Source: Malacoraja senta
Lineage: Eukaryota
DNA length: 64,000 bases
Assembly: GCA_038087875.1 (NCBI GenBank)
Contig: JAXLNO010005103.1
Coordinates: forward strand, 186,001 to 250,000
Reading direction: 5' to 3'
The translations under genes and the position numbers were made by a program. Below are positions 3,167-59,601 of the stretch, in pieces. A model generated the notes under the pieces. The model was not told the origin of the DNA. It was given only the letters and a program-made list of their open reading frames with translations, and ran no database searches. Within the stretch, counting starts at the first letter, position 1, and every line of letters begins with the position of its first letter.

Positions 3167-3439
3167 CCTGTGGAACATTGACTCCCTGCAGCAGAGTTGC
3201 ATGTTCGATGTAACAGGAGAATTTTGCCACATCTTCTCTACTCAGTTGAATTGTATTCTTCAGCTGGTAAGTCCCGTCCCAATTGGGCAACAGATCACTG
3301 GATTCAGACTCGTGGACCCCCTCACCATCTCTCAGCCACGTTACATCGATGGCCCGTGGGTAGAAGCCTGTGACAAGGCAGGAGAGTCTCAGTGATTGTG
3401 ACCCATCACGTTTAATCCCAATAAACACCTCAGGGGTTT
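3167..3439 (-). CDS. Second class I alpha3-type Ig C1 exon (orphan within the window)
   Basis: Acceptor cttacacttgcag, donor G|gtaagt, 273 nt phase 1-1, no stops; LSCLVTGFYPRAIDVTW...PNWDGTYQL...FSCYIEH with both Cys and the core Trp. Confidence 0.9.
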
Positions 3440-4426
3440 CTGCAAGTGTAAGAAGCGTCAGAATCAGTGAAGACATGAACAAAAGCCTTCAATTGTAAGA
3501 TCACTGCAACTCGCCTCTTTCCCAATCAGTTTTTTCTCCAGCTGAACTAAGTTTTCAGCCTAGACCCAAAATGCTGGAATAACTCAGCAGGTCAGGCAGC
3601 ATCTCTGGAGAGAAGGAATGCCCAGAGATGCTATCTGACCCACAGAGTTACTCCAACATCTTCTATCTTCGGTGTAAACCATCATCTGCAGTTCTATCTT
3701 GCACAAAGTTTACAGCCTTTTCTCTTTTCATTTTGCATTTCTGGCAAAACAACAAAACATTTAGTTTTAATATCACTGACATGCTCCTTATCTTAGCTCC
3801 AGACTTTAACTGACAGTGCAGATGAAAGGGGAATGCAGGGCCCAATGGAGGAGTATAACTCACCATTGGTATTGATGCTGTAGACATGATTGCTCCTACT
3901 TGTTCATCAATCTCTGCTGAATAATAACACCAAATATTCCAAGAGGGAATGGGAGGAAGAAGTTCTTAAAATAGAGAACTGTTGGAAATTGGATGTCACC
4001 ATCCTAAGGAGTAATAGTAAGATTAAATGAGAACTTACCAGTTTGAAGTTTGATCTTTATTTTATGAGGAGTTACGACGAGGGATTACGTGAAGAAGACC
4101 CCGTCCAGCCGCATGCGCGTCAATCTTCAAAGCAGCGGTGTGAAATCACAGGTAATAGTAATTGAAGTATAATAGTAAGATTAGAGAAGACTAGAACTAC
4201 CAGATGACCTTTATGAGGGTTGGGAGTGGAGGGCACGTAATCCCTCATCGTAACTCCACATAAAATAAAGATCAAACTTCAAACTGGTAAGTTCTCTTTT
4301 AATCTTACTATTTTACTTCGGAGTCACGTGAGTGATTATGTGAAGATTTCAAAGCTCTGTGATTTCATGCCGCAGATTCAAATCCAGGCGTCTCACTGCA
4401 TCGATTGACTCAGAATGAGTAAATAA

Positions 4427-5503
4427 TCAATAATGCATCAAACCATAACATTGCTTTAAACGCATTAATGGTTTATTTTGTAAAGAAACAATAGCAACCC
4501 CTTCTATCCCAGGGGGAAACCATAAAACTGAACTCAAAACAGAATGGGCAAATACCCCCAGTTTGGCAATTGGTTTATGATAAAACGTTTGGAACATCAA
4601 TTCACTGGGCCATCCTGCGGCCGTGAGAATATGGTCTATAGGGACGTCCATTGCCCTGGCCGCTGAAGTTGATGCCGCCCTGATGGAATGAGATTTAAAA
4701 TTGTCGGTGTCAATCCCAGCATAAAGCAGAACCTGCTTTAGCCACCTTGAAATAGTCTGAGCTGACACCTTTCTATGCGATTTTCTGTGGCTAATAAACA
4801 ATGCTGATTCCGCACCTCTTAGGGTTCTGGTAGCCTCGATGTAATATAACAAACATGACACCACACACAGGCGGGAATCTGTAGGGTATGCCGAAAAAGT
4901 AATCTTACACCCTGTCGCCCCTAGTCTACTCTGCTTGAGCAAATTATAGATGTAAAAAATGACGGTATCTGCTGACACTTCCATCCTGTCTAGTCGCAGC
5001 TTCTGTAATGTCTGCACACATTGGGCTGAAACCAACACCATAAGCATGACTACCTTCATGGTGACTTTGGCCAAAGACAGGGCTGTGACAGGAGTCTACT
5101 GACGAAGGAGCATAAGAACTTTGCTTACATTCCAGATTACCGAATACCTGGGCCTGGGAGGATTGGAATTAAAAATTCCTTTCATAAATCTAGAAACTAG
5201 AGGGTGTGTCCCCACAGAATATAGTTCTGATCCCATGGATAAGTATGAAGACAGAGCACTTCTGGCTGTATTGATCGCACTATAGCTTAACCTATGATCG
5301 AAATAGAGCATTGACAAGAATTCCAGCACGTCTGGGATGCCTGCAGTTTGATATGAAATATTCTGCCGTAAGCAGAACACCTCCCACTTTTTTATCAAAG
5401 AGATGTACTGCTTTTGGGTACTATCCCTCCAGGCCGCAGTGATAACATCCACGGTGCGATCGGATAGTCCTCTCCCCAGGTATGGCCTTCTTAGAATCTG
5501 CAA
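4427..5503 (-). pseudogene. DIRS tyrosine recombinase (split)
   Basis: YSAINTARSALS N-terminal domain; FKSHSIRAASTSAA (HxxR), AAGW and FQTFY (catalytic Tyr). Confidence 0.92.
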
Positions 5504-6384
5504 ATTAATAGATCAATACGATCATGTAAAGGATGTTGATCGCCAGTTACCGGGTGCACCAGTAGGTTTCTATGTTTGGGAACAATCATATGAGGCTGTG
5601 TAGTCATCTGTAAAACGAGAGGGAACCATGGATGAGTAGGCCAGTCGGGTACCACCGATACTCGTGAGGCGGAGACCTGCTTGATTTTTTGCAGACGCCG
5701 ACTCATGAGGCAGAATGGAGGAAATGCATATAAAAACATTCCACCCCAATGCAGCGAGAATGCATCTACTGCTGCTGCCCCATGAACTGGTTCCAATGAA
5801 ACATATTTAGGCAACTGGTGGTTTAGTCTGGATGCAAACAAATCGATATTTGGCATCCCAAACTGAGCAGCAACATCTTTAACTATGTCATGACTCAACA
5901 TCCATTCTGTGTTGTCATTGAATTGGTGTGACCTAGTGTCTGCCACTATGTTGAATCTACCTGGTAAGTAGATTGCTGAAAGCCAAATGTCTTTGGGAAT
6001 ACACCAGCTCCAGATCTGATTAGCCAATCTATCACAAGATTCCGACCTGACTCGACCCATATGATTAACATACGCCACTGCTGTAGTGTTGTCAATTTGA
6101 ACCTGCACATGCAAATGACTCTTGGTAGGGCAATAAGCTTTAAGCCCATAAAACGTTCCCAAAAGCTCTAAATAATTGATCCCTCGTAATTGCCGAAGGG
6201 ATGCCTCTTCCCTATTCCATCTGCCTCCACAGCTGGAAAAAGTATCAGTAGCATCCCAACCTAGAGCACTAACATCAGTCTGTAAAACTATGGAAGGTGG
6301 TTCAACCAAAATTTTCCTGGAACTACTTGAGACATTCATGATCCACCATTGTATTTCAGCAATGGCTTCAGCTGGTAATTCCAT
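5491..6384 (-). pseudogene. DIRS RNase H plus methyltransferase-like domain
   Basis: LQTDVSALGW, INYLELLG, IDNTTAVAYVN, YLPGRFNIVAD; then IDLFASRLN and LYAFPPF. Confidence 0.9.
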
Positions 6385-6725
6385 GGACCTATCAAATTGA
6401 CCTGAATGTGTCCTCAGTGCCTGTTCTTTTGCTCATTGTAATTGTTGATAATGCAGAGGTCCAAACTGCACAGCTGGAAAAGCAGCCACTAATTTACCAA
6501 TCAAGCTCGCCACCTGTCTGATTGAAGGTCGTTGTTCAGCAATGAGCTTGATACCACCTTCAATTAACTGCAGCCTTTTATCCCTGGGCTGTCACCAACA
6601 TGTGATCTGAGTTAATAGTGAAGCCCAAGTAATGAATAACATTGACTGGTGTTAATTTGGATTAACTGGATGGTTTGATGAACCCCAATTTCTCAAAAGT
6701 GAGTATAACAACGGAAACGGATGAT

Positions 6726-7623
6726 TCAGCTGCGTCCCGAGTCTTTCCTACAATTATCGTCCAAATAGGCCATTACGATATGACCCCGAGCTCGAAGTAG
6801 CCTCAGAACTGGTTTTAACAATTTGGTAAACAATCTAGGAGCTGAGGTTAATCCATTAGGCAGTGCTTTGAATTGCCATAATTGACTCATCCAGCTAAAC
6901 TTCAAATATCTCCTATTATCGCAATGAACAGACACTGAGTAATATGCATCTTTAAGATCTATGCTTGCCATATAACCCTTTGGAAATCAGCTGTTTAGCA
7001 GTAGGGAAAGTTTCCATTTTGAAATGTCTATACTGTACAAAAGGATTAAGGCTCGTCAGGTCCAGGATGATTCTACATCCTCCATCCTTTTTAGTCCTAG
7101 GAAATATATTGGACACAAACTGGTGGGGTTGACGAACCCCAATCACCTCATTCTCAATCACCCCTTTATTGCATAATTCCTCAAGTTCTGCCTTTATCTC
7201 CATATTCTCTTCGTGTGAGAAAATGAGTGTCCGGCTTGGAACATGCTGAGTGGGTGGACACAAATTAGGATAGAATTCAATTTGAAACCCTTCAATACTG
7301 CACAGCACAAACGGATCTGATGTTATCTCCTGCCATTCTTTTAGAAACAAGTGTAACCTACCCCCAACTTGTAAATATTTCCCAATTGAAATGTTTCTAT
7401 CAGGAGCAAAACCACCTACCTGCATGGTTATTGGTGGAACTTGTTGCCCCCGGTTCCTCATGGGAAAATTCATGTTTGCCCGTGTGCCTGTAGCAGGGCG
7501 CCAGCTGCGCATATTCGGGAATGAACGGCTCGTTCCTTCACCAGCCCCAGTCATTGCACCCCGTCGGTAGGGGAACTGCCTCCGAACCATTTTGCTGCCC
7601 ATCAGCGCTTTGATTAACCCCAC
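6726..7623 (-). pseudogene. DIRS reverse transcriptase (split over two frames)
   Basis: FVSNIFPRTKKDGGCRIILDL, FKME, SIDLKDAYYSV, FKALPNGLTSAPRLFTK, YLDD. Confidence 0.92.
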
Positions 7624-7714
7624 TGTCTTAGCCTCATCATCGAGCTTAGCGAGGTCCTCCCCAAACAGCAGATTTGGCAGTTGAACATTGCTGGGCTTGC
7701 ACTGCGCTGCAAAT

Positions 7715-8089
7715 TTAGGGTGAATTGTAGGGCGTGTGGCACTTTTTCCTCAAACAGTTCACTTCAAAATGTGCACTGCACAGAAGACCTAAGACCTTTG
7801 CGGAGGTGAATCCTCCTGGCCCGTCAATGGGTCTAGCAGACTTAGAAGTAGCCTTACGCCCCAACGGCACGGTGATGGTGCTCACAGGCAACGTGTCTGC
7901 AGTCGCTAACCCCCCTGCTAATGATGGTACAGGTGAACTAGGTGGGCACCCGCTACCCGCACTCCCGCGGTCTTCCAAGCTTTTAGCAGCGGGTCGCCTC
8001 GCCTTCACCTTAGAAGCTTTCTGCATGTTGATCTCGCTCTGAAAAACAAGCGTTTCCACCAAAAAGCAACCTCCAACTAAGTTGAGCAC
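7715..8089 (-). pseudogene. DIRS gag-like ORF1 N-terminal part (gag appears internally shortened)
   Basis: Position at the 5' end of the element, low-complexity basic/Pro/Ser-rich sequence, abrupt join near 7740 to a gag C-terminal segment. Confidence 0.55.
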
Positions 8090-11062: not shown

Positions 11063-14000
11063 TCCAAGAATTTAATATGTTCCTCCCTCTGACTCTTGAG
11101 ATTCCTCCTTATCCCTTTCTAAAGATACATCATGTTATTCTGAGAAATGTGCTTGCCAAGACCATGGCATCTGCAGTTTTAGTCTCCTGATCTTAGGAAG
11201 AATGTTCTTGTTATGGAGGGAGTGCTGTGAAGGTTCAGCAGATTTCAGGGATGGGAGGACTAATGTATGAAGGGCGATTTGGGCGATTAGTTTTACATTG
11301 TGATTAGGACCATTCAAAATCAACTACAACATTCTTATGGGTCTGTACAGATTGAAGAGAGTCAAGAGTGTTTTATTGTCATATGTCCCAGATAGTACAA
11401 TGAAATTCTTACTCGCTGCAGCACAATGGAATATGTAAACATAGTACATGGTAAACAATATGAAAAACGAGAAAGAGAAAAACAAAATCAATGTGCACAT
11501 ATATATATATATACACACACACACAAACATATATGTGTAGAAAAGTACGCATACATATATTCAAGAGGGAAATCCGGTCAGTTCAGGATCCAGTGGTCAC
11601 AATCTGATGGTCAGGCTTCAAGTTGAGATGAAGAGCGATTACTTCTCCCACAGAATGATGAAGGTGTGGAATGTTATACCACTGGAAGCAGTTGAACACA
11701 GATCATTGAATTTATACAAGGAGTTATATGTTATTTGTATGGTCAAAGGATCAGAGAAACAAAAGGATCAAGCTATAAATTTTAGGTCACAATTGATCAC
11801 ATGGAATAATAGTTCAGGCTCAAATGCCTGAATTCCTATTACTTTTATATTCTGCATTTCAACATTTTTATATTTATCGTGGCCACATTTCCTCTGCATT
11901 AAAGAACATGATAACTGGGATGCTTAAAAGGAACCGAGACCCTGGTGCCAATGCCTTTTTGCAGATGCATACATTGGTTTGGTGTTCACAAAGCGAGGAC
12001 AAATCAGAAATAATTTTCTGAACACGCCATCCATTGCTATTTCAATGTGCTTACCCAAGATACAAAAAAATAATACTATATTAATCTATATTAAAAAATG
12101 TTTGGATAAAATAAACAAAACACGGTCATCGAATGTCCCTGGGTAAGTCGTCCACCCCCTGCCCTCCACCCCTTTGAGAAGTGGCTGAAGGGTGATATTA
12201 AAATACATAAAGCTTTTAAATGAATCACTATGGTGAAAACATTTCCACCATAAAATCCAGCAGGGAATTCGACAGAGAATGCTCCCTCTCCTCCCCTCCC
12301 ACCCAATACTGGTGAGAATGAGGATCCAGATCAATGAATTGCATTTAGGGGACGGCTGGGCAAACACAAAAGAGAAAAGAATAGTCGGTTCTACATTGGA
12401 GAATCCAGCATAGACTTGCCAACCATGTTGCAGATCGCATAAGGTGGGAAGAGGCTCATGTGGACCATATGCAGCAGTATTGGCAGGATCGGCAGAGTGG
12501 CCTGTTCCTACACACTTGTCTCCACTACAACCTTGTATTACTTTGACTGCCAATTCATTTTTGATCATTTTGTTCCCATTCATTCTTTAAAAAATACAAA
12601 ATCAACTTTGACGTAAGATAACTGTGATTGATGCTGTTGCAAATAAATGGAGGCCTTACATTTTCTTAACAACAATTTAATTTTGCGCCTTGCATATTGT
12701 ATCTTTCATATTATATCTTGCACATTCCATATATCTTGCCTTTACTTCGCAACATGAAGCCACTATAAAACAGGGTGCAATCCAATGTGTTTACTTGGAT
12801 TTCATGCCAATCTATTTCCAAAAATCTTATAATCAATGGTCTATTCATCAAGCACATTCTACAGGCAACTATTATTAGGTGAAATCTCAAGAGCAGAACT
12901 TGTACCAAATGAGCCACATAAAATGAACTTGATCACTGTGCCACCAATCACTGTGGACAATTTTATATTCATATGGATGATAAATTCTTTGCATTAGATT
13001 AGAAATGTACAAAGTACAAACAATCAAGACTTTTTGACATCATCAAATAACCAAGTGTTATGTAACAACATTTATTGGTGCTGTGTCTCAGACTAAATGC
13101 AGTGTTAAAACAAAATATATTCTATCCAATAATGACTGTAGCTAATGGAATCTGCAACTAAAAACAGAAGACTGAAAGCATTCAATGGCTCAAGCAAAAT
13201 TATTGGGACAAATGGTTGATGTCACAAATAGGGTCAAGAACCTGCACCAGACCTGTGAGGGAAGAGGATGAATTGCCAATATATAGCAATCAGGGAGGAA
13301 TAGGACAGAGGCTGGTAGATCAAACGTAGAACCAGGTGGGGAGAGGATAATGGGTAGATGGAAACAGGTAGGAGAGGAGGAGGAAGAGGTGAACAACAGG
13401 AGAATAAACTGTTCAAATGAGACAGAGGTTCACTTGCACCTCTTTCAACTTTCTCTACTGCATTCATTGCTCACACTGCGGAGAAACTAGCTTAGATGTC
13501 AACCATTTTGTAGAGCACATCCCTTTGAAGTAAAGATCATCCTGAGATCTGTTGTATGGTATTTTAATACCCCTTCCCACTCTCACACTCACCCATCTGT
13601 CGTTAACCTTGGGCACAGAAAGTTTTAAGTAAAATATCTGATAATCCACCTGGGTAACTTACAAGCCGATGGTATGAATATAAAGTTTTCACATTTCAGC
13701 TTATCCATACCACTGGTGTTCATTTGTTCTCCCACAACCACCCATACACCAACTTTGCTCCATCTGCCCATCATCCCCTCCCCAGCTGATTCCACCTGCC
13801 ACTTACCAGTCTCTGCCCCATTCCTCCTTCAAACTGTTAGAATCTTCCCATCCTCTCATTCAATTCTAATGCAGTGCCTTGCCTTGAAATGTTGGTATAT
13901 GTCAGTTGCCTCCACAGATGCTGTTTGACCAAGTACTTCCACTGGCCTTTCTTTAGTCTACAATTCTTGTTGGAAATAACCACAAAGTCTTACTCTATCT

Positions 14001-14116
14001 ATAATTGAAACCATTTAATTGGTGCTTAGAGAGCTTTCTAAAATCATGAGGGCGATTGATCAGGATTTATTTTACCCAGGGTAGGGTAATCAGGAACCAG
14101 CAAAAACAGGTTTAAG

Positions 14117-14751
14117 CAGTGTTCAATGCTAATTTTTTAGGTGTCGGAGCTGTCAAACAGGGGCATTTCAGATTTTGCTGGGGGGGGGGGGGGCAAGCCA
14201 GTCTCCCTAGAGGGTCAAACAAGATTATAGCCTATTACTACATCCCAGTGTATAGCTAGCACATTAAAACATATAATACAATTTAATTATGACAAAATAT
14301 TGCACCGTTGCACTCACTGATTATCATGAAATATAATTATGAAGCAAGTAAAGAAAAAGACGGTTATCATGTATTTTTACAGAGGTGCCGGCAAGACACC
14401 GACTCGCCCTGACTATCCTGCAGCTCTGGGCCTTCACACACACACACACTCTCACCCTCACACCCATTCACCCTCACACCAACCCACTCACCCACCCACC
14501 AGAGTTCCAGGCTCAGCTCCAGGCCCACAACCACAAACGATGCACACATCACATGGTCTGTCTCTGCTGCATCATAGTGTTCCCCTCCTCCTACAGGGAA
14601 CCTCAGTAGTGATGGGTCTTCCCCTTACCCCTCTTTTAATCAGGTTACCCCGACCACACATCCGCTAGTTAAAATTCCACGCTGTTTATTTTTTCTTTAA
14701 CAGAGGTGCCGGATCGGTGCTCAGGTGAGCTCCGGCAGCACTGCACCCCTG
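14117..14751. mobile_element. Non-autonomous hAT element inserted in a CR1 remnant
   Basis: 8-bp TSD ggtttaag (14109-14116, 14752-14759); imperfect CAG..CTG TIRs. Confidence 0.82.
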
Positions 14752-15672
14752 GGTTTAAGGTGAGGAGGAAGATTTAGTAGGAACCTGAGAGGCAACCTTT
14801 TCTACTAAGAGGTTACTGGGTGTATGGAATGAGCTGCCAGCGAAGGCAGAATAACAACATTGAAAAGACACTTGGACAGGTACATGGATAGAACATGTTG
14901 AGAGGAAAGTGGGCCAAACGCTGGCAAATGTGACTAACCTAAATGTAGCATCTTGTTCAGCTTGGAGCATTAGGCTGAAGTACCTACTTCCATGCTATAT
15001 GGCTCTATGACTCTTTGTTAGATGAACATAAACATGGCAAATGGAGTTTAATAATGGAAAATATGTGCTCACACACTTTGGTAAGAGCAATTCAAAGGAA
15101 GCTATTATCTAAATGGAGTGAGATTGCAAATGAGTGGAGTACAAGAGATTCAAGTGCTTAAAGTGCAAAACAAAAAGCCAGCAGATAGATGCAGCACACA
15201 ACTCAGAAGGTGAGTAGCATTGAAAGGTAGGTTACTATTGTAATTATGGTACATGATGTTGCTAAGGACAAATCAGGAGCACTGTGCACAGCTTGGTCCT
15301 CAAATTTAAGAAAGGATATATTAATATTGGATATCAGCTAGAAGAGATTTCTGGAATAAGCAAGTGTTGCCTAACCATGAATGGCTGAAATCACTGGTTC
15401 TGTGTCCCTTGGAGATGACAAGAAACAGAATTAACCTTATGAATGTATTAAAGAGGCATGATGTGGTGGTGAATTGATGGATAATGCGTGGATATATTCT
15501 AAAAGAACAGGGAATTGTGTCTTATGTGGAATAAGCACAGTAAAGGAGTTGAGGCATCAGTCATATCAGTTGTAATCAACATAAATTGCTAGATAGCTCT
15601 AATTTGTACAAATGCAGGGCAGACTATTGAGAATTTCTGTCATGTTTGATAAACTTAATTTAACTCTTTCCA

Positions 15673-15678
15673 TTTATT
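15673..15678 (-). terminator. Candidate polyadenylation signal AATAAA of the class I-like gene
   Basis: tttatt on + strand just downstream of the predicted stop codon. Confidence 0.5.
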
Positions 15679-15729
15679 TCAGTTCCTGCGTTTAAATCAC
15701 ATCCATGAAATCTTCTACTCAGCGATTAG

Positions 15730-15770
15730 TTAGCAGTGCACGTTCTGCTTTGGTTGAATATTTTGATAAT
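15730..15770 (-). CDS. Probable terminal cytoplasmic exon (D)YQNIQPKQNVHC*
   Basis: Strong pyrimidine tract and acceptor (tttaacttccctcctcag); phase-1 compatible with the TM donor; TAA followed about 50 nt later by AATAAA. Linkage to the TM exon is inferred. Confidence 0.65.
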
Positions 15771-15899
15771 CTGAGGAGGGAAGTTAAATATTAGACAACA
15801 AAGAAATGGCATAGCAGAGAACAGAACTCAGAAAGATGCAACTAGTTTATTTGCTTTAACTGTTGATTCATCCCACATAACATCTTCCTTCCAGATATA

Positions 15900-16412
15900 A
15901 AGGCACAGCGCCAGACACCTGGGTTTGATCCTGACCACGGGTGATGTCTGTATGGAATTTGTACCTTCTCCCTGTGACTGCATAGGTTTTCTCCAGGCGC
16001 TCCAGTTTCCTCCCACATTCCAAAGACAGATGTGCAGGTTTGTAGGTTAATTGACTTGTGTCCCTAGCTTATGTGGGTGATCGTTGGTTGGTGCGGACTC
16101 AGTAGGGCCGAAGTGTCTGTTTCAATGCTCTCTCTCTAAACTAAACAAAAAACTCAATACTCCTTCAAATAGTTTCGTTCACACAAGTTCTATGTTATCT
16201 AACTTTCGCTTCCACACTAGGGTCAAATTACAGAGACCAATTAACCCATAAAACCTGGCATCTTTAGTATGTGTGTGAAAACTGGAGGACAGTGGAAACC
16301 CATGCGGTCATAGGGAATACATGCAAACTTCACACAGCCGACAACCGAGGTTAGGATTGAACTGATGTGTATGACGCACTGAGGCAGCAGCTCTATCAGC
16401 AGCGCCACTCTG
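15900..16412. mobile_element. Tail-to-tail pair of V-SINEs (+ then -) just upstream of the terminal-exon acceptor
   Basis: 15900-16150 forward, about 16170-16412 reverse; both carry the V-domain. Confidence 0.75.
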
Positions 16413-16949
16413 CCTCAGGTTGCGTCATGTTCAGCACAAACATTGTTGGACAAAGGACCTGTTCCTCTATTACAGGGGCATTCCCATTCACCGTAAAATT
16501 CAGCGAACTCAGCACCATTGGGTCACTGGAAATATTCCCTGCCTGACCATCAGATCCCTCCAGATCAGTCGGACAGACACCAGTTAGGCAGCATCTGCCT
16601 GCAAATGATTCATGTCCCTCAAACCCCTGCATCTCCATGCACCCACGAAGGTGCACCCCAGACGCCACCATCCCTGGCAGTGCTTTCCAGGCACACACCA
16701 CATAGTATGTAATAAAAACTTGCCCTTTTTAAAAACTGCAGCTTCTACCCTGCACTGAATATAATGCAATAATTTAAATGCCATAGTAGGCATTTAGTTA
16801 ATTGGGATAATTTTAGTCAATTGGGAGGTGTGATTGCAAATCTTGTACAATATCATAAACCAAGTAAAATGTGACAAAGTCAAAATGGCCAGGCACAAAG
16901 AACAGAATAATCATGAACATCAATAACATGTCAGTAGCTAGACTCTCCT

Positions 16950-19900
16950 AGTGGCAGCATGCTGTAAGGTTGCAAACTCGTTTGCTCCCTTAATTTTTAA
17001 CTTCCACTCACCACTCTTTCAATGTTACTGGTGACTATTTGACTTCAAGACACCGTCTAACTGTTCATAAAGTGTTGATAACACTTTTACACGCCTTAAT
17101 CGTGAAAAGGATGGAGACAAGAAGGAAAGGAGGATCCCCAAAGAAGGAACTGGGGAAAGCCACAACCACAGCTGCAGCTTCTGATTCCAGCATCATAGAA
17201 GCAATATCGAAAATGAACGATGAATTGAAAAATGAGCTGAAAAATGAAATGAAAACAAGATTTGGCAGTTTGGAAGAAATGGTGAAAGGAGTTTCGACCA
17301 AATTGAAGGAAGTCCAAGGAATACTGTCTTTGTTACAAGATGAACTTCGTGAACAAAAGGATCAAATTGATATCTTGCGCACCCTGGGACAGGCGAGAGA
17401 TTTGAAGATTGAAAAATTGGAACGGCGAATGAATGAAAACACTCGAGCACTTCAGCAATACAAGTCTAAAAATATGGACTTAGAAAACAGAAGCCATCGT
17501 TTGAATTGACGAATTGTTGGTTTGCCGGAAGGCCAAGAAGGAAATAACGTTATAAAATATGCTTCTAAAATGATAAAGGAAACATTCAACATTGAGCACA
17601 ATGAAAACCTTCCGTTCATGGATAACGCACACAGGATTGGGAAGAGATCCGGTAATAAACCGAGACACTTGATCATTCGGTTTCATTTTTTTCAAATGAA
17701 GGAGAATATTCTCCAGGCAGCAAAAATGTTTGGTGTGATTGAATATGAAGGATGTAAGTTTCGGTTTGTCCCTGATTATAGTTACGAGCTTTTGGAAATA
17801 AGAAAGACTTTTTATAATGTAATGTCTGATTTACATAAGAAAAACTGCGCCCAGCTTTATTGTCACCAGCTAGATTGCGTATTCGGCTTTTCAATGGTAA
17901 CTTTTGATTTTTTAACAGTCCTCAAGACGCCTCCAGCTGCGTCTGAAGAGCTACGACGAGGAAGGGGAGTAATTGATAGCTGATTAAGTTATAATTGGAG
18001 ATTTACTGTTCCTATTTTGACAACATTTCGTTTGGTAATGATTAAGAATTTAACTGGACGAGTTGTTTTTCGTTTATATATATTCTTTTAAGAATTTCTT
18101 TGTTAATTCGTGTTCTCCTGTCGTTAGACAAACTAAGAGAACGCAGTTCTTGTTTTTCATATCTTGACCTTGGATAATAATAAGCAGCATTCCATGCCAG
18201 TCTGTATTTTTTTTTCTTCTCTCTCAAAGAGATAATAACGAATGTGCTATGACGTAATGGTTAAATATTATTCATTTTATGCTGAGCGCTGTTACTGGGA
18301 GAGATGGGATCATGGAGGGGATTAGGTAGTTTGCTGACTGTCTTTTGGTCAGTTTGGGGTTCTACAGGGGTGGGAGGGGGGAGGGGGGAGGGGTCTTTTG
18401 TTCCTTATTTAGTGATCTCCATTTGTGCAAATTCTGAACTACAAAATTGGCTGAAATGTCGTCACCTGGCTCCGCCCTAGATTTTACTTCTTCCAGTATT
18501 ATGAACTTTTAGGCTTCAAGAAATTAACCCATTACATCCCACATGATTTTTACAAGCAATATGGATAAAGTTCCTTTCATGGAATGTGAATGGCTTGAAC
18601 CATCCGATTAAGAGGATTTAAAAAAAAAAGTTCTTCACAGACTAAATGCTCAGATTATCTTTGTTCAGGAAACTCATGTAAGGCAAGATGACAAGTCACG
18701 ATTTTTCAAGTTTTGGAGAGGACAGCAGTTTCATTCAAATTCACAGGCTAAGGGGAAAGGAGTCTCTATTTTTATCGACCCCTCAATTCCGTTTGTTCAG
18801 CATGAAACAATTTCTGATCCATATGGCAGATTCTTGGTGATTACCGGTGTCCTTTATAGGCAAAAGGTCGCTATGGTGAATGTCTATGCACCAAATATTG
18901 ATCACCCTGAGTTTTTTAAACAGTTAATTGCATCCTTTCCTAATTTAAATGAACACTTTTTAATAGTGGGTGGAGACTTCAATTGCTGTTTGAATCCCTC
19001 GATTGATAGATCTACATCTGATCATGTGCTTCCAAATAAATCAGCTAATTTTATTAATTATTTTTTACTTGACTCGGGAATGTTAGAAATTTGGAGATTC
19101 TTACACGCAAATGACAAAGAATTTTCATTTTTCTCTCATGTATATCATAGTTATTCTAGGATCGACTATTTTATACTAGATTCTCGGCTAGTTCCATCGG
19201 TCATTGCATGTGAGTATGATACAATTGCTATTTCTGATCATGCACCAGTGAAACTATTGATCAAACTACCTGATTCCAAGTTTAGTGCTAAACAATGGCG
19301 ATTTAATACTACTTTGCTTCAAGACTTAAACTTTATTAAGTTTATGAAAGATCAGATTGCTTTTTACTTCTTGACAAACTCTAATGAAGAGATATCCAAT
19401 GATATAGTTTGGGATGCTTTTAAGGCATATATTCATGGACAAATTATTTCATACTCCGCGGGATTAAAAAAACAAACACAAAAAGAAATACACACATTGG
19501 CTGACGAGATTAAAGAAATTGATAAAAAATATTCAAAAGCTCCTAGTTTAGAGCTCTATAAGAATAGAGTTGAACTTCAATTGAGATATGATTTGTTATT
19601 AGTATCACCGATTGAGAACCAGTTACGTAAAACCAAAAGTAAATTTTATATAAATGGCAAAAATCTGGTAAATTACTTGCTAATCAATTGAAAGCAGTGT
19701 CGGCCAAGAGTCAGATTACTAAAGTGAGTAAACGGGATGGTACAGTAACTGTAGACCATGATGAAATTAATAAATCCTTTCAGGAATTTTATACCTCCCT
19801 ATACCAATCAGATTTTCCTACTGATTCCAATATAATGCATGAGTTTTTAAAGAAACTGAACTTACCAAATTTACCATACAATGAGTCTCTGTTGTTAGAT

Positions 19901-22790
19901 GAACCCATCACGGAAGAAGAAATACAGAAAGCAATTTTTTCAATGAATTCTGGTAAAACTCCCGGTTTAGATGGGTTTACAGTAGAATTTTTAAAGTATT
20001 TCTCAAATTTATTGTCTCCATGGCTATGCAAGGTATTTAAAGAAGCCTTTTTTAAGGAATAGATTACCACAATCTTTTTATGAAGCTTCTATTTCTTTAA
20101 TTTAAAAAAAAGATAAAGACCCTACTGAAGTGACATCATATAGACCTATATCAATGTTAAATGTAGATTTTAAAATTATTTCCAAAATATTAGCTATGAG
20201 ATTGGAAAAGATTTTACCGTAAATTATCTCTGAAGATCAGACAGGTTTTATTAAAAATCGTTACTCATTCTTTAATGTTAGGAGATTAATAAATATTGTA
20301 CATACAGCGTCTAATAAAACCCCAGAATGTGTCATCTCACTTGATGCCGAGAAGGTTATTGATAGAGTAGAATGGAATACTTATTCAATATACTTGAAAA
20401 AGTTAAGATTGGTCAAAAATTTATCTCTTGGATCAAACTGATATATCTTATACCTCAGGCTTCTGTATTTACTAATAATCAGAGATCCCCTTTTTTCAGG
20501 CTCTTTCAAGGTACTAGACAGGGCTGTCCCTTAAGTCCTTTACTATTTGATATTGCTTTGGAAACTTTAGCCACTGCTATTAGGGAATCCCCTAATATTT
20601 TTGGTATTGTCCGGGGGAATAAGACACATAAGCTATCTCTTTATGCAGATGATCTGTTATTATTTATTTCTAACCCTGAGAAATCTATTCCGGCAATAGT
20701 AGCATTACTTAATCAATTCAGTAGTTTTTCTGGTTATAAACTAAACCTTAGTAAGAGTGAGCTTTCCCATTAAATAAATTTGTTTCGAGTTATGGACAGC
20801 TTTCATTTAGATTGACTACCGAAAGTTTTACTTATTTAGGTATTAAGATCGCCAAGAAACACAAGGATTTATTTAAAGCTAATTTTATTCCTTTAATTGA
20901 CCATATTAAACATCAGTTCACTAAATTGTCACCAATGTCCTTATCCTTAATTGGCCGAATCAATGCTATTAAAATGTTCATTTTACCTACATTTCTGTAT
21001 TTATTTCAGACGATACCAATTTTTATTGCCAAATCTTTCTTTGATATTATAGACTCTAAAATTTCTTCATATATATGGCAGAATAAAAATCCCAGACTAG
21101 GTAAAAAATACCTACAGAAATCAAAAAAAGTTGGTGGTTTGGCATTGCCGAACCTTAGACTCTACTATTGGGCAGTCAATGTTAGTTATTTAACATTTTG
21201 GACAAAAGATTTAGAAGATACCCAATGCCCTGGATGGATAAACCTAGAATGTGATTCCTTACAAGGTCTATAATTGGCTTCTATTCTAGGGGCCTCGTTA
21301 CCTTTTACAATTACGAGATTGAATAAATATATGATGAACCCAATAATAAGACATACGTTCCGAATACAGTTTCAATTTCATACGTTTTTTAACTATCTGA
21401 TTTTATCCAAATTTCTCTTCCAACCATCTAGTACTGATCAAGTTTTTTTGTTATGGAAGAGGAAGGGATTAGTAGCTTTTCGTAATTTGTTTTTGGAGTG
21501 TTGTTTTATGTCTTTCGAACAACTCTCCAATAAATATAACTTACCTAATTCACACTTTTTTAGATATTTACAAATTAGACAAAAGGAACTACCCCTTTTT
21601 CCGCTACCACATCAACCCGAAATCTTGGATTTTTTTTACAGTTGAACCCTTATCAGAAAGGATTAATAACGACTAATCATGAGTTGATTTTAAAATTGCA
21701 AATAGATACATTTGATAAAATTAAGAATGACTGGGAAAGAGAACTCCAAATTTCTTTATCTATAGAGAAATGGGAGAGGATCCTTCAATTAGTTAATACC
21801 TCTTCAATGTGTGCAAGACACGCTTTGATACAATTCAAGGTGGTCCACAGAGCTCATATGTCAAAAGATAAGTTAGCTCGTTTTTATGGTTATATAAATC
21901 CTACCTGTGACAGATGTAACTCTGAAGTGGCATCACTGACCCATATGTTTTGGTCCTGCCCTATTTTGGAAAAATATTGGAAATACATTTTTGATTCTAT
22001 TTCGGTAGTCTTAGGTATAGATTTACAACCTCATCCTATTACTGCAATTTTTGGGTTACCAATGTTAGATTCTATTCATTTGTCCCACTCCGCCCATCGG
22101 TTGATTGCTTTTACCACATTAATTGCCAGAAGATTTATTTTCTTTAAATGGAAAGATTCCAACCCTCCGACCACACTCCAGTGATATTCTGAAACGATAT
22201 CATGTTTAAATTTAGAAAAAATCAGAAGTGACATTGTTGAACCCTTGGTTAAATTTGATAAGACTTGGGGAAAATTTATAGAACACTTTCATACAACATA
22301 AATTGTTCCCTCTTTAACCTTTATAAAAATTATTTTACCTTCATAGAGTGGAACGGACTTGACGACAAACAGACTTAAATTGTTGAATATCTCAGTTCAG
22401 ATTCGGTTTTGCTCTGTTTTGTTTTATTTATTTATTTACTTTATTTTTATTCTTATTTTATTATTATCAATTTTTTAATTTATTTTTTAGTTTAGGGGGG
22501 TTTTGTTTTTTCTTTTTCTTTTTGTCTTTTTATCTTTGCTTTTTTTAAACATTTATGTTTCCTTTTAAAGATTTAACTACATTTACATAAAGACCGAGAG
22601 GTCTATATTCATTGTGTATTTTGACACTGGTCTCATATTAGGTTATACCTGTTATTAATGTGTTTAATCCTGATCCCTATGTATCAATATCATTGTTATG
22701 TTTATCATTATTCTTTTTGCTCTGTTTTTTATGTTTTATTTTTGTTTTTGATTTTTGGAATAAAGCAATAAAAAAAATTTAAAAGAAAGG
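16950..22790 (+). mobile_element. Decayed full-length L1-clade LINE (different family) in the TM-CYT intron
   Basis: ORF1 pieces 17039-17983; EN/RT pieces about 18570-22184 (GGDFN, SRIDY, GTRQGCPLSP, YADD, CDRC...HMFWSC) with several stops and frameshifts; T-rich 3' UTR and A-rich tail; 5' boundary approximate. Confidence 0.9.
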
Positions 22791-23320
22791 TACTGAATAA
22801 AAAAGTTGGGATGTTCTGCTACAGTTGTACAAGATGTTGGTGAGGCCACATTTGGAGTATTGTGTTAAGTTTTGGTCACTCCACTATCGGAAGGATGTCA
22901 TTAACAGGGCCTGTGATTCAGGGAGAGGATGAGAATGCTTGGACTTTAGTCCTTGGCACGCAAGAGGCTGAGGGGTGATCTTATAGAAGTTTATAAAATC
23001 AAGGAGCATAGATAGATTGAATGCACAGAATCTTTTAACCAGCCTTGTGTAATCAAGAACCAGAGGACTTAGGTTTAAGGTGAGAAGGAAACGAGTTACT
23101 CGGAACCAGAGGAAGTGGAAATATGGAAGAACATTCCAGGGGAAGGAGTTGAGGCAGGTATTAAAACACATTTAGAACACACTTGGACAGGTACATACTG
23201 TAGATAGGAAAGGTTCAGTGAGATATGGGTCAATTCCAGGAAAATTGTAGTTTAAACATGGCATCTTGGTTGGCATGGCTAAGTTGAGGCAAAGGGCCCA
23301 TTTCCATGCCGTATGACTAT
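22790..23320 (+). mobile_element. CR1 3' remnant
   Basis: Degenerate YKSWDVLLQLYKMLVRPHLEYC and RLRGDLIEVYKI, followed by CR1 3' UTR. Confidence 0.75.
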
Positions 23321-24007
23321 GGCACCGTGGGCTTGAAAAGCCAATTCTTTTCCGTTTCACTGCTAAATGATAGTTAATCACCCTCAGTAATAGTGACCAC
23401 AATGGCAGACCCATGACCATGACTGGTTTACAGTGATAATAAGCTAACCATTGCCTCAGTTCAAATATGCATGTCGTTGATGTTCAATGACTAAATTGTT
23501 GCTGCATTCTTAGTTTTGGCAAGGTTCTGATCTGGGTGCTGGAGCTGTTAGACATCTTGATACCATGAAAGCAGAATCTCAATTTCAGGAAATATACTTG
23601 CTGAATGGTGTCTCAGACCAGCAATGCCAGGGAACATTGTATTTTGAAGAGGAAATATTACACAACCAAGGCCAAGTGCTCGAGAAAGCAGCACGTCTGT
23701 TATTTCAATGAAAACTCTGCTCTTCATCCATCTTGTCATTTTGATCACCCAGTTTAGTTTATAATATTGTATAACATTTGCAATCAATTCTCACAGTTTA
23801 TGACATTTACAGCTGGCGTGAAGATGCATCAGTCAATACCTTCTGTCTTCCAATTTAGTTTATTTAATAGAAAGATAGAAACATTAAAAAATAGGTGCAG
23901 GAATAGGCTATTCGGCCCTTTGAGCCATACATGGCTGATCATCCAAAATTAATACTCCGATCTGGCTTTTTCCCCATATCCCTTGATTCCCTTAGCCCTA
24001 AGAGCTA

Positions 24008-24330
24008 AATACTCTCTCTTGAAAACAGTGATACAGTGTGTAAACAGGCCATTTGTGCCACCAAATCCATACTAACCAGCAATCACCCATTCATAATAGA
24101 TTTCCCATCCACTCCTACACTATCAGGGTGTCTTACCAAGGATGATTACCTGCACACCTGCTCATCTTTGGGATATGGGAGGAAACCGGAGCTCCCTGAG
24201 GAAGCCCACATAGTCACAAGAGAATGTGCAAACTCCACGTAGACAGTACCCAAGGTCCAGATTGAACCTGGGTCTCTGGCGTTGTGAGGCAGCAGTTCTA
24301 CCAGCTGCACTACCATGCTGCATTACGTAC
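24008..24330 (-). mobile_element. V-SINE
   Basis: Reverse-complement head and V-domain. Confidence 0.75.
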
Positions 24331-24645
24331 AAACTCTAAATCCTACACTGACTTTCCATCCACTTGTTATATTCAACACAATAACTCCTTTACACAGGAG
24401 GAAAGTGAACTGCAATTCATCACCAGAATATCTCTTACAACAGTGTGATCACAGGCAAGAAACCAGTGATATAGATAATAATACACTAAAACCCTGATCA
24501 TCCAGCTCTCTTGGGATTTGGGAAATGGTAGATTTTAAGGACTGCTGCATGTTACTGCAAACATACTTTAATTCAACTAATTTAAGCACTTGTTGAGCAA
24601 GTCAGTGGTTGAGGTGCATCTGTACACTACTATCAGACTTAAGCG

Positions 24646-25039
24646 TATAAAAAAAAAAACTGAGGTCAGGTAAAGGGTGATGATAGCTGGAAAGTTGGTA
24701 TGTCCCATTTGCGTAATGCTCATAAAAACTATTTGTTTTTCTCTTTCTCCTCTTTCTCTTTCTCCTTCTTTTCTAGGGTCTATTTCTTAACTCTTTTTCT
24801 ATTGTTTTTAATTTTGTTCTTATAGGGTCTTTGTTTTGTCTTGTTGTCACATTTTCTACACTTTCACTTTTTCCTTCACTTTCTTCTTTCTTTCAATCTT
24901 ATCCTTTCCTTTTACTAGTGTAAAAAACAAACGGAGTACATTAATTGTAAGAAGATATAAGTGACGAGTACTAATGTATGTAGTTGTAATGTAATGTACT
25001 TCTAATAAATAAAATTAAAAAAATAAAAATTAAAAAAAG
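24646..25039 (+). mobile_element. 5'-truncated L1 (3' UTR only), same family as 42478-48743
   Basis: 10-bp TSD gacttaagcg (24636-24645, 25040-25049); sequence resembles the reverse complement of 42480-42880; A-rich tail. Confidence 0.88.
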
Positions 25040-25619
25040 GACTTAAGCGGAGGAATACCCATTGTAATTTGCCTGAAGAGTCTCGAACCAGATTGTCACC
25101 TATCCATGGCCTCCAGGGATGTTGCCTGACCTGCTGAGTTACTATAGCACTGTCCCTCACAGTCTTTCCCAATCTTATAAATCAAAAATAGTCAGCATTT
25201 TTCTACATCATAAAGAGTCATGGAAATATGCAGCATACAAACATGGCCTTTGTCCCACTGACCTGCACCAACCATTCATGTACACTAATCCTATATTTAT
25301 CCCACATTCTCATCAGCTCTCCCCACATTGTATCATGCACAATCTAGGGGACAACTAACCTACCAAACAATGTTTTGGGGATGTGGGAGGAAACCAGAGC
25401 ACCTGGGAAAACCCACATGGTCACAGGAACAACATGCAAACTCTACAGATACAACAGCCAATGTCGGTATTTAATTCAGGTCTCTGGCTCTGTGCTGTCC
25501 TGTTTCACATTGTAGTCCACCTGTCATGTTGTTGCTCATTCATTCGGCTTTCCACCTTGAACCATTTCTCCCACTACTCACATTCCCACTTAATTTGGAG
25601 TTTTCCAGCAACAGCAGCC

Positions 25620-25925
25620 TTGGTGGCAGCTACTGTGTGCAGCGGTAGAGTTGCTGCCTTACAGTGCTTGCAGCACCGGAGACCCAGGTTCGATCCCGAC
25701 TACTGATGCTGTCTGTACAGAGTTTGTACGTTCTCCCCGTGACCGCGTGTGTTTTCTCCAAGATCTAAGGTTTCCTCCCCACTCCAAAGACGTACAGGTA
25801 TGTAGGTTAATTGGCTTGGTGTGCGTGTATAGGATAGTGTTAATGTGCGGGGATCGCTGGTCAGCGCAGACTCGGTGGGCCTAAGGACCTGTTTCGTCAC
25901 TGTATCTCTAAATTAAACTAAACAA
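25620..25925 (+). mobile_element. V-SINE, full length (neighbours at about 25330-25500 minus and 26000-26310 plus)
   Basis: Complete head, V-domain and ctaaa tail. Confidence 0.88.
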
Positions 25926-26564
25926 AACTAGTAAATGTTAAACTGCAACCAATCTGCCTCATAGCTGACTTGGATCCTGAACAGTGCGAGCCCCCAACAG
26001 AGCAGCACAGTGTCACAACTCGTAGAGCTGCTGCCTCACAGCGACACAGACCCGGGTTCAATTTTGACCTTGAGTGCCATCTATGTGGAGTTTGCACGTT
26101 CTCCGTGTAACCGAATTGGATCCCTCCAGGGGCTCCGGTTTCCTCACACATGCTAAGATGTGTCAGTTTATAGTTTAATTGGCCACTGTAAATTGCCCCT
26201 AGTGGGTGGGTGACTGGATGAGAAGGTTCAATGAGATAGAATTCATGAGAACAGGTGGTTGGTGGTTGGCATGGACACAGTGGGCCGAAAGGACTGCCCC
26301 CATGCTGTACCTTTTAATGACTCATTGATATTTCTAGGATTTGGGGCAGTGAATCCATAATGTATAACATGTTTTTACACTGAATTCACAATTTTTAAAT
26401 ATCTGATTATCAGAAACATTTAACAACAGCACAAAGGCTAGTTGACAGTGGTGACTGTCGAGGCATTTCAGGTGTAGCTGCTGCCTTATCCTACTTGAGA
26501 TCGATCATTTCTTCAAGCCCAATACCATTACTAGCAACAGTGCATCACAATTTTTCCATCTTAC

Positions 26565-26672
26565 CTCTCCTCTTTTTTCTCCACCAAACAATTACTGCCA
26601 AGACAATAGCCATCAATATCAGCACACACACGGCAATAAGGCCTATGTGCCTGTCTTTCTTCCTATTTCCTT
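26565..26672 (-). CDS. Connecting peptide/transmembrane exon of the class I-like gene
   Basis: Not in ORF track; acceptor cttatttttcag, donor G|gtaaga, 108 nt phase 1-1; EGNRKKDRHIGLIAVCVLILMAIVLAVIVWWRKKRR (hydrophobic span followed by a basic stop-transfer). Confidence 0.92.
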
Positions 26673-29040: not shown

Positions 29041-29350
29041 CTGTTAATCACATCATGAGGAAAGATTCATTTTTTATTTAAACATACCTTTCATGGATTT
29101 CAGTTCCACAACTGAGAATCTCAAATACTCCTTCCTTGTATATTAGTTATTTATTTACTTTTGATAAATTTTCTGTTGACAAAGTCTTCTGCTCATGTGG
29201 AGAGTGGGTGCTGATTACGTGATTGATTAGAGCAACACCACTAAACAAAGAAAGTTTAAGCATCTTGGAATATGGGATGTAGTCACAATGATTAAAATGG
29301 AAACAACAGAAGATAATGATTATCTATGAAAGAATATTTAATGTTCTTAC

Positions 29351-29617
29351 CCCAGATGATGGTCTTCCCACCGGGCAGGCTGCTGTGATCGACATGCCAG
29401 GAATACTGTTTCCCATCATATGGATCATACTCAAGGACAGACTTTAGATGATATGTTCCATCGTTGTTGGGTATGACCCCAGAAGATTTGGTCTCAGAGA
29501 CATGTTGACCATTCTGCAACCAGCTGACATTGATGGCCGGTGGGTAAAATCCAAACACAGTGCAGTACAGGACTGAATGGTCATCAGGGCGGGCAGCGAG
29601 AGTGACCTCAGGGGAAA
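29351..29617 (-). CDS. MHC class I-like alpha3 (Ig C1) exon with F-strand Cys replaced by Trp
   Basis: Acceptor tactgtcttgtag, donor G|gtaaga, 267 nt; LYCTVFGFYPPAINVSW...PNNDGTYH...QYSWHVDHSSL...IIW. Confidence 0.95.
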
Positions 29618-36743: not shown

Positions 36744-37019
36744 CTTTTCTGGTCAGGTATGTCTTTCCAATTGCATAGTATGTAAGCCATAGATCCACAC
36801 AGTCATGTTCTAACAAGCTCTTGAAATAACGGTTCATTTTTTCATTCTTGTCCCATTTCTCTTTGAAGGGCTCAGCTATTGGATCATGCACCGTCCACTT
36901 TAGCTTGTCCTTATCAAAACTAAATGCATATCTTCCATCAAAAGCCAACTTCAATATCCCTACAGTGGGACTGTGATCGTTCACCTCACAACCAAACTGT
37001 CCTTGAACGTAGTGATAAT
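36744..37019 (-). CDS. MHC class I-like alpha2 exon
   Basis: Acceptor atttttatttcag, donor G|gtgagt, 276 nt; YHYVQGQFGCEV...AFDG...KEKWD...DCVDLWLTYY with the C101-C164 pair. Confidence 0.95.
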
Positions 37020-39449: not shown

Positions 39450-41290
39450 CAGTGGTTCTTAACCTTTTTGGCCCCACGACCCCATCAGGCATTCTTGATC
39501 AGTACCGTGACCTCTGAAACAAAATTTGAAAAAAAACAGCCCGATTTATTAAAACATGTCTGCCATTGCTCAGTCAATGGGATGGCTGAAATTGCTTCGC
39601 AGTCATCAGGCAATCAAAACGTGGACGAATGCTCGACAGGCAGCACCTCATGTCAGTGTCGATCACAAGCCTATTGCGTACCTTCGTTTTCAGAGTTACC
39701 ATAGTTGAGAATCCACCCTCACAGTGAGAGGTTGAGGGGGAATGGACCAATAGGGTCAGGGCCCTCTTCGAAAGAGCAGGACATTCCTTCACTTTCAGCC
39801 AAAACGTGGCGAGCTCTTGTTCCATGAAGTCACTCTTGAGTTGCGCATCTTCACGAATTCAGTAAAATTCAACCTTCGGTCACGTCAGTATCGCTGATGC
39901 CACCGTCTTCAACGGAAAAGGGTCAGAGCATCCACTCATCACGAGAGCGGTCATCCAGTCTGGGGAAGTAACGTTCGATGGCTTCACTAATTGCCAGAAG
40001 GTGGGTTGAGATCTCCTCGTGGAAGTGGCATTCAGCATCAGGCGTAGCATCCAGGAGAGTCGTCATCTCAGGGAAGATAGCCATGTCACCGTCCTGGACT
40101 GTTCTCTGGTAAAGGTTCCTCCTGAATGCCATTGGGAGGATTCCTTGAAGCGACAGGTTCAAGGAATTCACCTCAGCGAAGAAGTCAGCCAAGTAAGCAA
40201 CCTTCATCACGAACAGTTCAACTTGCATCTTTTCATGAAGCTGATTCTCCTTCTCAGTACCCCTTCTCTCCAAGAACAGCGCTATTTCCACTCGAAGTCG
40301 AATCACATGATTGAGAACTTTACCACGCAAAAGCCAGCGCACCTCTGTGTGGAATAACAGAATAGTGAAATCGGCGCCCATTTCTTCACACATCGCTTGA
40401 AGATTCTTGAGTTTGTTGCACTCTCTCGGATGTGGTTCACAATCTTCACCACATCTGAAAGCACTTCTCGAAGACCAAGAGGGAGAGTCTTCATCGCTAA
40501 AGCATGGCGATGTATCATGCAGTGGGGGAAGGAGACATGTGAAGCGACATCATTCACGAAGTCTTGGAAACCGGATCTGCAACTGACCATGGAAGGTGCC
40601 CCATCTGTACACATCCCGACAAGGCGTTCCCAGCCAAGCTCATGTTTGATGAGGAAGGCTTCCAGCATTCTGAACACATCTTCTCCCCGAGTGGTAGTAG
40701 CCAATGGCTCCGAGAACATGTACACCTCCGTCATGGCTACTCCATCGAGGTAACGAATGTAGACTAGCAGTTGGGAACATGAGGCAACATCTGTTGACTC
40801 GCCCAGTTGCAGTGAATACACTGGACTGCTCTTCACAGCCCTCACTACTTGCAGCAGAATATCATTACTCATATCCGAGATTCCAGCACCAACTTCGCTG
40901 CTTCGAGAAGGCATGGCTTGATAAGCTCTTCACCGATGCTGTGAGGTTTCTTAGTCTGTTCGATTCGATAAGCAATCCGGTATGAAGCCTCTAACGCTGC
41001 TTCATTTTGATGAGCGCAATGACCCGTTGAATAGATGCGGGATCCCTTGAGTTATGGCTTCTTTTCGTTTGAAATAGTCCACGCTCTTCCCCGCCAGGTT
41101 GCTGTGACAAGACTCCAAATGGATCTTCAGTTTGCTGGGCTTCATGCTCTCGTGACTCAAAACCTTGGCACAGAGAACACATTGCGGCTTGACCACGGAT
41201 TTTGAACAATGCTTGTGAAGCCCAACTTGAGAAATGTTTCACTATACGTGCGCGTCTTGGAAGACATGGTTCACAACACACACTGTTTGT
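39450..41290 (-). mobile_element. hAT (Buster/Charlie, ZBED5/SCAND3-like) transposon, decayed, one TIR visible
   Basis: TIR cagtggttcttaacc after ctttagag; BED finger PQCVLC..SMKPSKLKIHL, YSLQLGESTD, CTDGAPSM, HCMIHRHALA, HTEVRWL, dimerisation motif PSTSHCEGGFS; stops and frameshifts. Confidence 0.9.
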
Positions 41291-45800: not shown

Positions 45801-46674
45801 GCGATATATCTGAAGTATCATTTGTTTGAAAAAAGACCTCCATTTGTTCTTTTAAATATATACTCGCTTGTGGATCTTTTAAAATTTGAGAGTTAAATCT
45901 CCAGAATGAATTATTCTTAGACAATCCTTCCAGTTTTAAAAAGAAAGTTAGTGGAGAATGGTCTGAAATTGAATTTGTATGGTATATTGCATTAGATGTT
46001 TGGGGGATTAATTTTGTATCCAGCAGAAAGTAGTCTATACGTGAGTATGTCTTATGTACCATTGAGTAAAACGAATATTCCCTGCCAGTTGGATTCACAA
46101 TTCTCCAAACATCTGCTATATTAGTGTTATTTATGTAGGTATTGAGGAGTTCCCCAGTTTTCGATTTCATATTCCCTCTCTGTTTTTGACTTGATTTATC
46201 TAAGTACGGATCTAAAACAGAGTTAAAGTCTCCGCCTATTATAACATTTTGATAGTTTGACTCTGCAATTATATTGAAGATTTTATTGAAAAAGTGGGGG
46301 TTATCAAAGTTAGGGGCATATATATTTACCAAAGTAAATGGAGTGTCATGGATTTCTCCATTAACTATTAGGTATCTCCCTTCTATATCTGTTATAATAT
46401 TCTTTGCTTTAAATGGTATACCTTTTCTTATGATAATTGACGTGCCTCTAGATTTTGAAGTGAATGAAGAGTGGTATGTTTGACCTATCCATTTCGCCCT
46501 CAGCCTAACTTGGTCCTGAGGTTTTAGGTGTGTTTCTTGTAGGAAGGTAATGTCAGAATTATACATTTTTAGCTGAGCTAATATCTTACCCCTTTTGATA
46601 GGTTCGTTAATACCTCTTATATTCCAACTACAAAATGAGATTCCTCCTAGGTTCTTTTGTGTGGTGTCATGCAT
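42888..46674 (-). pseudogene. L1 ORF2p (APE endonuclease, RT, CCHC) with one frameshift near 45800
   Basis: SWNIRG, LQETH, GGDFN, SRIDY, SDH; KTPGPDGF, LDAEKAFD, RQGCSLSP, YADD; CDKC...HSFVFC. Confidence 0.93.
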
Positions 46675-59340: not shown

Positions 59341-59601
59341 TTGCTGTTTCGTTCTGCCTCCGCATCCATTCATCGACTTGCCCTTTGATGATTCCATGGA
59401 AACCAGTTTCAGAGACCGTATTTGTTACCCAGTAATTCCTGTCAAATGCAGCCGCCATCCATTTCTGTCTTGGAACTGTAATTACCATGTTTTTGTCATA
59501 ATACTGTATCTCACAACCGTCCAGTACACCCACGACACTATATTCTGGTAGATGAGTACTCCCGTGGTTCAGGGTGTAGTAATAGATCAGTGTGTGAGGC
59601 C
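59341..59601 (-). CDS. MHC class I-like alpha1 exon
   Basis: Acceptor ttctttgtttctag, donor A|gttagt, 261 nt; GPHTLIYYYT...LPEYSVVGVLDG...NYW...MRRQNET with Y7, Y59/W60, R84 and the N86 glycosylation sequon. Confidence 0.95.

Follow-up and report, generated by a model that had tools for sequence, protein, structure and literature searches.

The nonclassical MHC class I lineage UGA of sharks and rays is represented in the PDB by entry 9CH4, titled 'Crystal structure of shark nonclassical MHC CLASS I, UGA', and a review reports both UFA and UGA as CD1-like lipid binders (PMC12562908). The binding of a lipid-like ligand by UGA together with beta2-microglobulin is cited in that review as a personal communication, an earlier paper mentions UFA but not UGA, as unpublished data (PMC10751288), and a deep hydrophobic groove is given as a statement in the literature (PMC12562908, PMC10751288). 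The two lineages are named in these articles, and our search of the literature found no primary paper on either of them and no trafficking experiments on any UGA protein. Both the UGA lineage and its CD1-like character are therefore already on record (9CH4 title; PMC12562908; for UFA, PMC10751288). In humans, CD1B, CD1C and CD1D end in the recycling motifs YQNI, YQDI and YQGV, respectively (PMC5002281). Here we analyse a class I-like gene in a 64-kb stretch of Malacoraja senta DNA (the window), which we take to be a further, possibly impaired, copy of UGA and not a new kind of molecule, and we examine the short exon that encodes its cytosolic tail.

Gene structure and identity

Exons were identified from stop-free stretches and by Pfam and PDB searches (Table 1). 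They follow the class I plan of alpha1, alpha2, alpha3, transmembrane (TM) and tail exons, with GT–AG borders and phase 1 junctions throughout the gene, and the five exons from alpha1 to the tail contain no frameshift and no stop. Between them lie introns of 22, 7, 2.7 and 10.8 kb, packed with open reading frames (ORFs) of LINE, DIRS-like and hAT-like type; a last intron of 10.8 kb is therefore not unusual for this gene. A leader exon was searched for within the 64-kb window, including by alignment of L001, a Leucoraja RNA contig described below, and was not found.

Table 1. Features of the UGA-like gene in the window (coordinates are window positions).
Feature	Position	Strand	Details
Alpha1 exon	59341..59601	-	261 nt, phase 1 at both ends; L001 152-414 aligns, 92%
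Alpha2 exon	36744..37019	-	276 nt; Pfam MHC_I E 2.6e-13; 9ch4_A 125 bits; L001 417-690, 94.5%
Alpha3 exon	29351..29617	-	267 nt, Ig C1-set; Pfam C1-set E 3.7e-17; 9ch4_A 119 bits
Connecting-peptide and TM exon	26565..26672	-	Ends ...VIVWWRKKRR; GT donor 26564-26563
TM-to-tail intron	15771..26564	-	10.8 kb; skipped in L001; antisense LINE inside, ORFs 16994-22181 (+)
Terminal exon, coding part	15730..15770	-	(D)YQNIQPKQNVHC and TAA stop; Yxx-phi signal Y-Q-N-I
AATAAA hexamer	15673..15678	-	Specific to the window; not conserved in L001
Terminal exon, 3' untranslated part	12962..15729	-	Reaches at least 12962; indels relative to L001

The sequence and the predicted structure both point to UGA. 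Chain A of 9CH4 is by far the top match for the alpha2 and the alpha3 exons, and a confident AlphaFold model (pLDDT 87) for the orthologue in Amblyraja finds 9ch4 as its top structural match, with a Z score of 29.7 and 58% identity. Stegostoma P0159, which matches 9CH4 at 568 bits over all 268 residues, groups with the window in a single 100/100 clade. On these grounds we assign the gene to UGA as a skate copy of this nonclassical class I lineage.

The preliminary description of this DNA had proposed a likeness to CD1, by convergence or shared ancestry. The part of this proposal that stands is the signal: the gene has the short tail with a tyrosine-based recycling motif that is a trait of the CD1 family. 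The sequence and the fold, however, have no more affinity to CD1 than to classical class I or to MR1. In Pfam, the alpha2 exon scores 50.4 bits against MHC_I and 16.6 bits against MHC_I_3, below the cut-off of 35; no CD1 molecule occurs among the 60 best PDB sequence matches; and in the structural ranking chicken CD1-1 is 34th (24% identity), with classical avian class I, YF1 and MR1 beside or above it. Membership of the CD1 family is thus not supported by the Pfam profile, the PDB matches or the structural ranking.

Several other features of the locus and its relatives were observed. The LINE ORFs in the introns on the minus strand (42891-48550 and 39577-41238) are largely open and comprise ORF1-like (356 aa), endonuclease (300 aa) and reverse-transcriptase (987 aa) segments; the plus-strand LINE at 16994-22181 is more broken, and hAT-like transposase fragments also lie in the introns. 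Read-through of the alpha3 donor (29295-29350, minus strand) gives GKNIKYSFIDNHYLLLFPF followed by a stop, an ending that nearly matches the C terminus of a predicted 311-aa Leucoraja isoform lacking the TM segment (P0171); a similar but shorter alpha3 read-through end is found in Rhinoraja model P0180. This ending could belong to a soluble isoform or could be an annotation artefact shared by the models. A second, intact-looking class I alpha3 exon at 3168-3443 (minus strand) is 88% identical to Leucoraja P0016, a member of the sister lineage of UGA, and has a DIRS-like element (4430-7749) just upstream; it looks orphaned, because a search of the window found no matching alpha1 or alpha2 exon. 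Finally, the NCBI models P0152, P0166, P0167 and P0169 of Leucoraja erinacea fuse a GPR139-like receptor to a UGA heavy chain. Such fusions are probably artefacts of models that read through from one gene into its neighbour, and a search for GPR139-like sequence in the window found none.

The tail exon and its transcripts

On the minus strand, the 3' end of the TM exon at 26565 reads ...AGGAGAG|GTAAGA and encodes the peptide ...TGGTGGAGAAAAAAGAGGAGAG, and the acceptor of the terminal exon consists of a CT-rich polypyrimidine tract and an AG at 15771-15780. From 15770 the letters continue AT TAT CAA AAT ATT ... TGC TAA, with the TAA stop at 15732-15730. Both junctions are phase 1 and splice in phase, and the join therefore yields WWRKKRR-DYQNIQPKQNVHC-stop (residue by residue, W-W-R-K-K-R-R-D-Y-Q-N-I-Q-P-K-Q-N-V-H-C-stop). 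The tyrosine of YQNI is the seventh residue past ...VIVWW and lies after RKKRR on the cytosolic side; the TM helix is predicted in the AlphaFold model of the Amblyraja orthologue. Reading through the TM donor gives RRGKMEKL-stop.

As a chance control, we collected every AG site between 26560 and 3500, downstream of the TM exon, whose preceding tract was 75% pyrimidine or more (n = 46). A Yxx-hydrophobic peptide in the same phase followed 6 of these 46 strong-tract acceptors. The Yxx-phi motif by itself is thus not beyond chance, and the case for the exon therefore rests on relatives and on RNA.

Searching proteins with the alpha2 exon and then looking up the clusters of the matches led to 334-aa ORFs from public RNA assemblies. 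The source of one of them is L001, a 3455-nt Leucoraja contig in the Logan assembly of SRR11241640, which aligns to the window in blocks at 59603-59341, 37017-36744, 29619-29351, 26673-26565 and 15772-15490; its identity to the window is 92–94% in the four coding blocks (94.5% in the TM block, L001 957-1065) and 83% in the fifth. In L001, base 26565 is joined directly to base 15770, exactly as proposed (...AACAGGAGAG|ATTATCAAAATATT...). We also mapped read contigs over 12800-16100, most of which are 90–95% identical to the window. The X1 contigs, about 93% identical, span 12805-15116 and 15265-15772 at depths of 5–29 that are mostly similar from contig to contig. One of them (585 nt, from a run labelled 'RNA?') covers 15265-15772 only from its 78th letter and therefore breaks at the acceptor; owing to an AG/AG ambiguity its break at 15772 is placed within 2 bases of the acceptor, and the link to the TM exon comes from L001. 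As the RNA contigs are 83–94% identical to the window, they derive from relatives or paralogues of this copy. The join of donor 26565 to acceptor 15770, with the tail RKKRR-D-YQNI, had been proposed in the preliminary description, and it is borne out by the sequence and by the exact junction in a relative's RNA. We conclude that close relatives make transcripts with this splice and that the exon at 15770-15730 is the genuine last coding exon of the gene.

Beyond the acceptor, L001 (1064-3455) is colinear with the window from 15772 down to 12962, so that the 3' untranslated region of the terminal exon is at least 2.8 kb long. An AATAAA hexamer had been pointed out after the stop codon; it is present, but the site reads AACTATA in L001, where the transcript runs through into a repeat-containing 3' untranslated region. 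Relatives therefore do not usually rely on this hexamer as their poly(A) signal.

Conservation of the tail

In Amblyraja, Leucoraja and Rhinoraja, proteins from annotation and from transcripts terminate in DYQNI... or DYQTI..., with the tails RKKRRDYQNIPPNQNVPC in Amblyraja radiata, RKNRRDYQNIQPNQNVPC in Leucoraja erinacea and RKKR(K/R)DYQTI(Q/P)PN(Q/R)N(M/R)RC in nine copies of Rhinoraja longicauda. The corresponding tails are AYENIRANQNLRC in Pristis (AYENI...), DYESIRAHRRVNC in Hemitrygon (DYESI...) and DYENIPAHRNVNC in Mobula (DYENI...), and shark tails end at the motif (Heterodontus YNAV, Stegostoma YNVI, Scyliorhinus YNTV, Cetorhinus YNVV and Mustelus YNAV). The tyrosine and the hydrophobic residue at +3 are kept in the UGA of skates, sawfish, stingray, manta and five shark orders, and the other tail positions drift.

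A maximum-likelihood tree recovered a UGA clade (100/100) in which 12 of the 16 rows have a Yxx(I/V) close to the membrane. Across these 12 motif-bearing rows, which stand for 12 species including that of the window, Y and I/V are invariant and the x positions vary; the four motif-less models of the clade (Heptranchias isoform X2, Pristiophorus and two Pristis paralogues) are unusual models or paralogues. The window lies inside a skate subclade (100/100) and is 94% identical to the Amblyraja protein and about 90–91% identical to that of Leucoraja (L001). The sister clade (100/100), which joins UGA at 99/99, has the motif in 0 of 10 rows, and its tails are longer. Because UGA keeps the motif and the sister lineage does not have it, the tail is best read as a conserved signal for sorting to endosomes or lysosomes. 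The suggestion that the tail carries a CD1b-type Yxx-hydrophobic signal thus gains from the comparison, a membrane-proximal signal of the CD1b/LAMP type being shared by sharks, rays and skates. The full four-letter match to the YQNI of human CD1b, by contrast, is not conserved, as orthologues read YQTI, YENI, YESI, YNAV, YNVI, YNTV and YNVV; since the two middle positions vary between species, the match is coincidental.

The name UFA for the sister lineage was weighed but set aside as unproven: our searches found no separate PDB entry for UFA and no sequence-level definition of it in the literature.

State of the window copy

The codon at 29399-29397 (minus strand) is TGG (Trp) in the window and TGT in L001. 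It occupies the position of the alpha3 disulfide cysteine, which is present in 29 of the 29 UGA-clade relatives that reach it, and the copy may therefore fold poorly or be becoming a pseudogene. Disruption of the alpha3 disulfide reportedly blocks the transport of mouse class I molecules. A damaging mutation, an allelic difference or an error of sequencing could account for the Trp. The comparison of the window with L001 gave an overall dN/dS of 0.35, which indicates that the coding sequence has been under constraint. UGA is also multicopy in a related skate, Rhinoraja having at least ten copies on one chromosome.

Discussion

Judged from its sequence, UGA probably cycles through endosomes or lysosomes, and we give a probability of about 0.7 to the reading as a whole, namely that the window holds the tail exon of a skate UGA gene with a Yxx-phi sorting signal whose protein follows this route. 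The tail has the attributes of such a signal: a conserved tyrosine and a conserved phi residue that enclose two variable ones, 6–9 residues past the TM segment and at or near the C terminus. A tyrosine about seven residues from the membrane in a tail of 10–20 residues is typical of lysosomal-type Yxx-phi signals (LAMP-1, CD63, CD1b), and extreme C-terminal placement marks the same type, often with an acidic or Gly residue before the tyrosine. In the mechanism that we propose, RKKRR would act as a basic stop-transfer cluster that is followed by D-Y-Q-N-I in the short cytosolic tail. The motif would bind the mu subunits of adaptor complexes, AP-2 and possibly AP-3, and UGA at the cell surface would thereby be taken up into endosomes or lysosomes; there it might load or exchange a ligand that is not a peptide and is probably a lipid, as CD1b, CD1c and CD1d do.

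Other accounts of the tail have to be weighed against this one. That 15770-15730 is a chance ORF behind a chance acceptor, the true tail exon lying elsewhere, draws on the frequency with which strong acceptors are followed by Yxx-phi peptides in our control; it is contradicted by the exact L001 junction, the break of the X1 contig at the acceptor and orthologous tails in more than ten species, and we regard it as extremely improbable. Little more can be said for a regulated retention of the TM intron that would remove the sorting signal, as the preliminary description envisaged. The read-through ORF ending in RRGKMEKL-stop does exist in the window, and the Pristiophorus UniRef model P0003 resembles such a read-through, but L001 and two other full-length transcript-derived ORFs (P0175 and P0176) are spliced to the tyrosine-bearing tail; the sequence used instead by the single alternative Leucoraja isoform (X5, P0001) is unrelated, and we found no match to it in the window. 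This switch is thus highly unlikely. A different role for the conserved tyrosine deserves more weight but is still unlikely: instead of CD1b-like deep endolysosomal sampling, it might serve recycling through AP-2 and early endosomes only (as in CD1c and human CD1d), phosphotyrosine signalling or basolateral sorting. Yxx-phi motifs are generic, the x positions differ among UGA orthologues, and only some CD1 isoforms bind AP-3 despite similar motifs. The very short tail, with its tyrosine about seven residues from the membrane, speaks for lysosomal-type sorting instead, as do the position of the motif at the very C terminus of shark tails and the acidic or Gly residue that often precedes the tyrosine.

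A further question concerns the copy itself. As one of many UGA copies in skates, it might have lost its function or be in decay, with a tail that is without effect in this gene and is intact only for lack of time. The change from Cys to Trp at a conserved disulfide position, the many Rhinoraja copies on one chromosome and the absence of a leader exon from the window are in its favour. Against it, the five exons are free of frameshifts and stops, all splice sites are canonical and dN/dS relative to L001 is low at 0.35; the Trp could have the other origins given above, and the leader may lie past the edge of the window, given introns of 7–22 kb. We consider decay a tentative possibility, somewhat short of even odds, and one that is compatible with a functional motif in other copies.

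Under the preferred reading, that of a sorting signal conserved in UGA, a lysosomal-type signal that is missing from the sister lineage makes a testable cell-biological prediction. It suggests that one class I-like molecule of sharks and rays samples endosomal compartments as CD1b–d do, and it bears on the age of lipid antigen presentation. Descent of the UGA and CD1 Yxx-phi tails from one ancestral lipid-presenting, endosome-sampling class I molecule, predating the split between cartilaginous and bony lineages, is doubtful in our judgement; if true, endolysosomal lipid presentation would be as old as classical MHC and not an amniote innovation.

Among known systems, the heavy chains of human CD1b (tail RRRSYQNIP), CD1c and CD1d are likewise class I-like, and their tails are basic and very short, with a Yxx-phi motif close to the C terminus (PMC5002281). 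UGA nevertheless resembles classical class I and MR1 at least as much as CD1, and YQNI is not constant among its orthologues. The sister lineage of UGA (Leucoraja P0016-like, annotated 'MR1-like' and possibly UFA) differs in its longer tails, which have no Yxx-phi motif in the 10 species sampled. LAMP-1, LAMP-2 and CD63 have the same placement of the tyrosine at 6–9 residues from the membrane in a tail of 10–20 residues, with the motif at the C terminus as in sharks; the LAMP-1 motif, which we take to be YQTI, would be that of Rhinoraja UGA. These proteins are unrelated to UGA, and the likeness is restricted to the predicted sorting signal. Shark UGA (PDB 9CH4) has the alpha3 disulfide cysteine where the window copy has Trp, and most of the sharks sampled gave one UGA match per species (three in Pristiophorus), whereas the family is multicopy in skates. 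Its shark members carry the same short Yxx-phi tail, which batoids extend by nine residues after the motif, ending in Cys.
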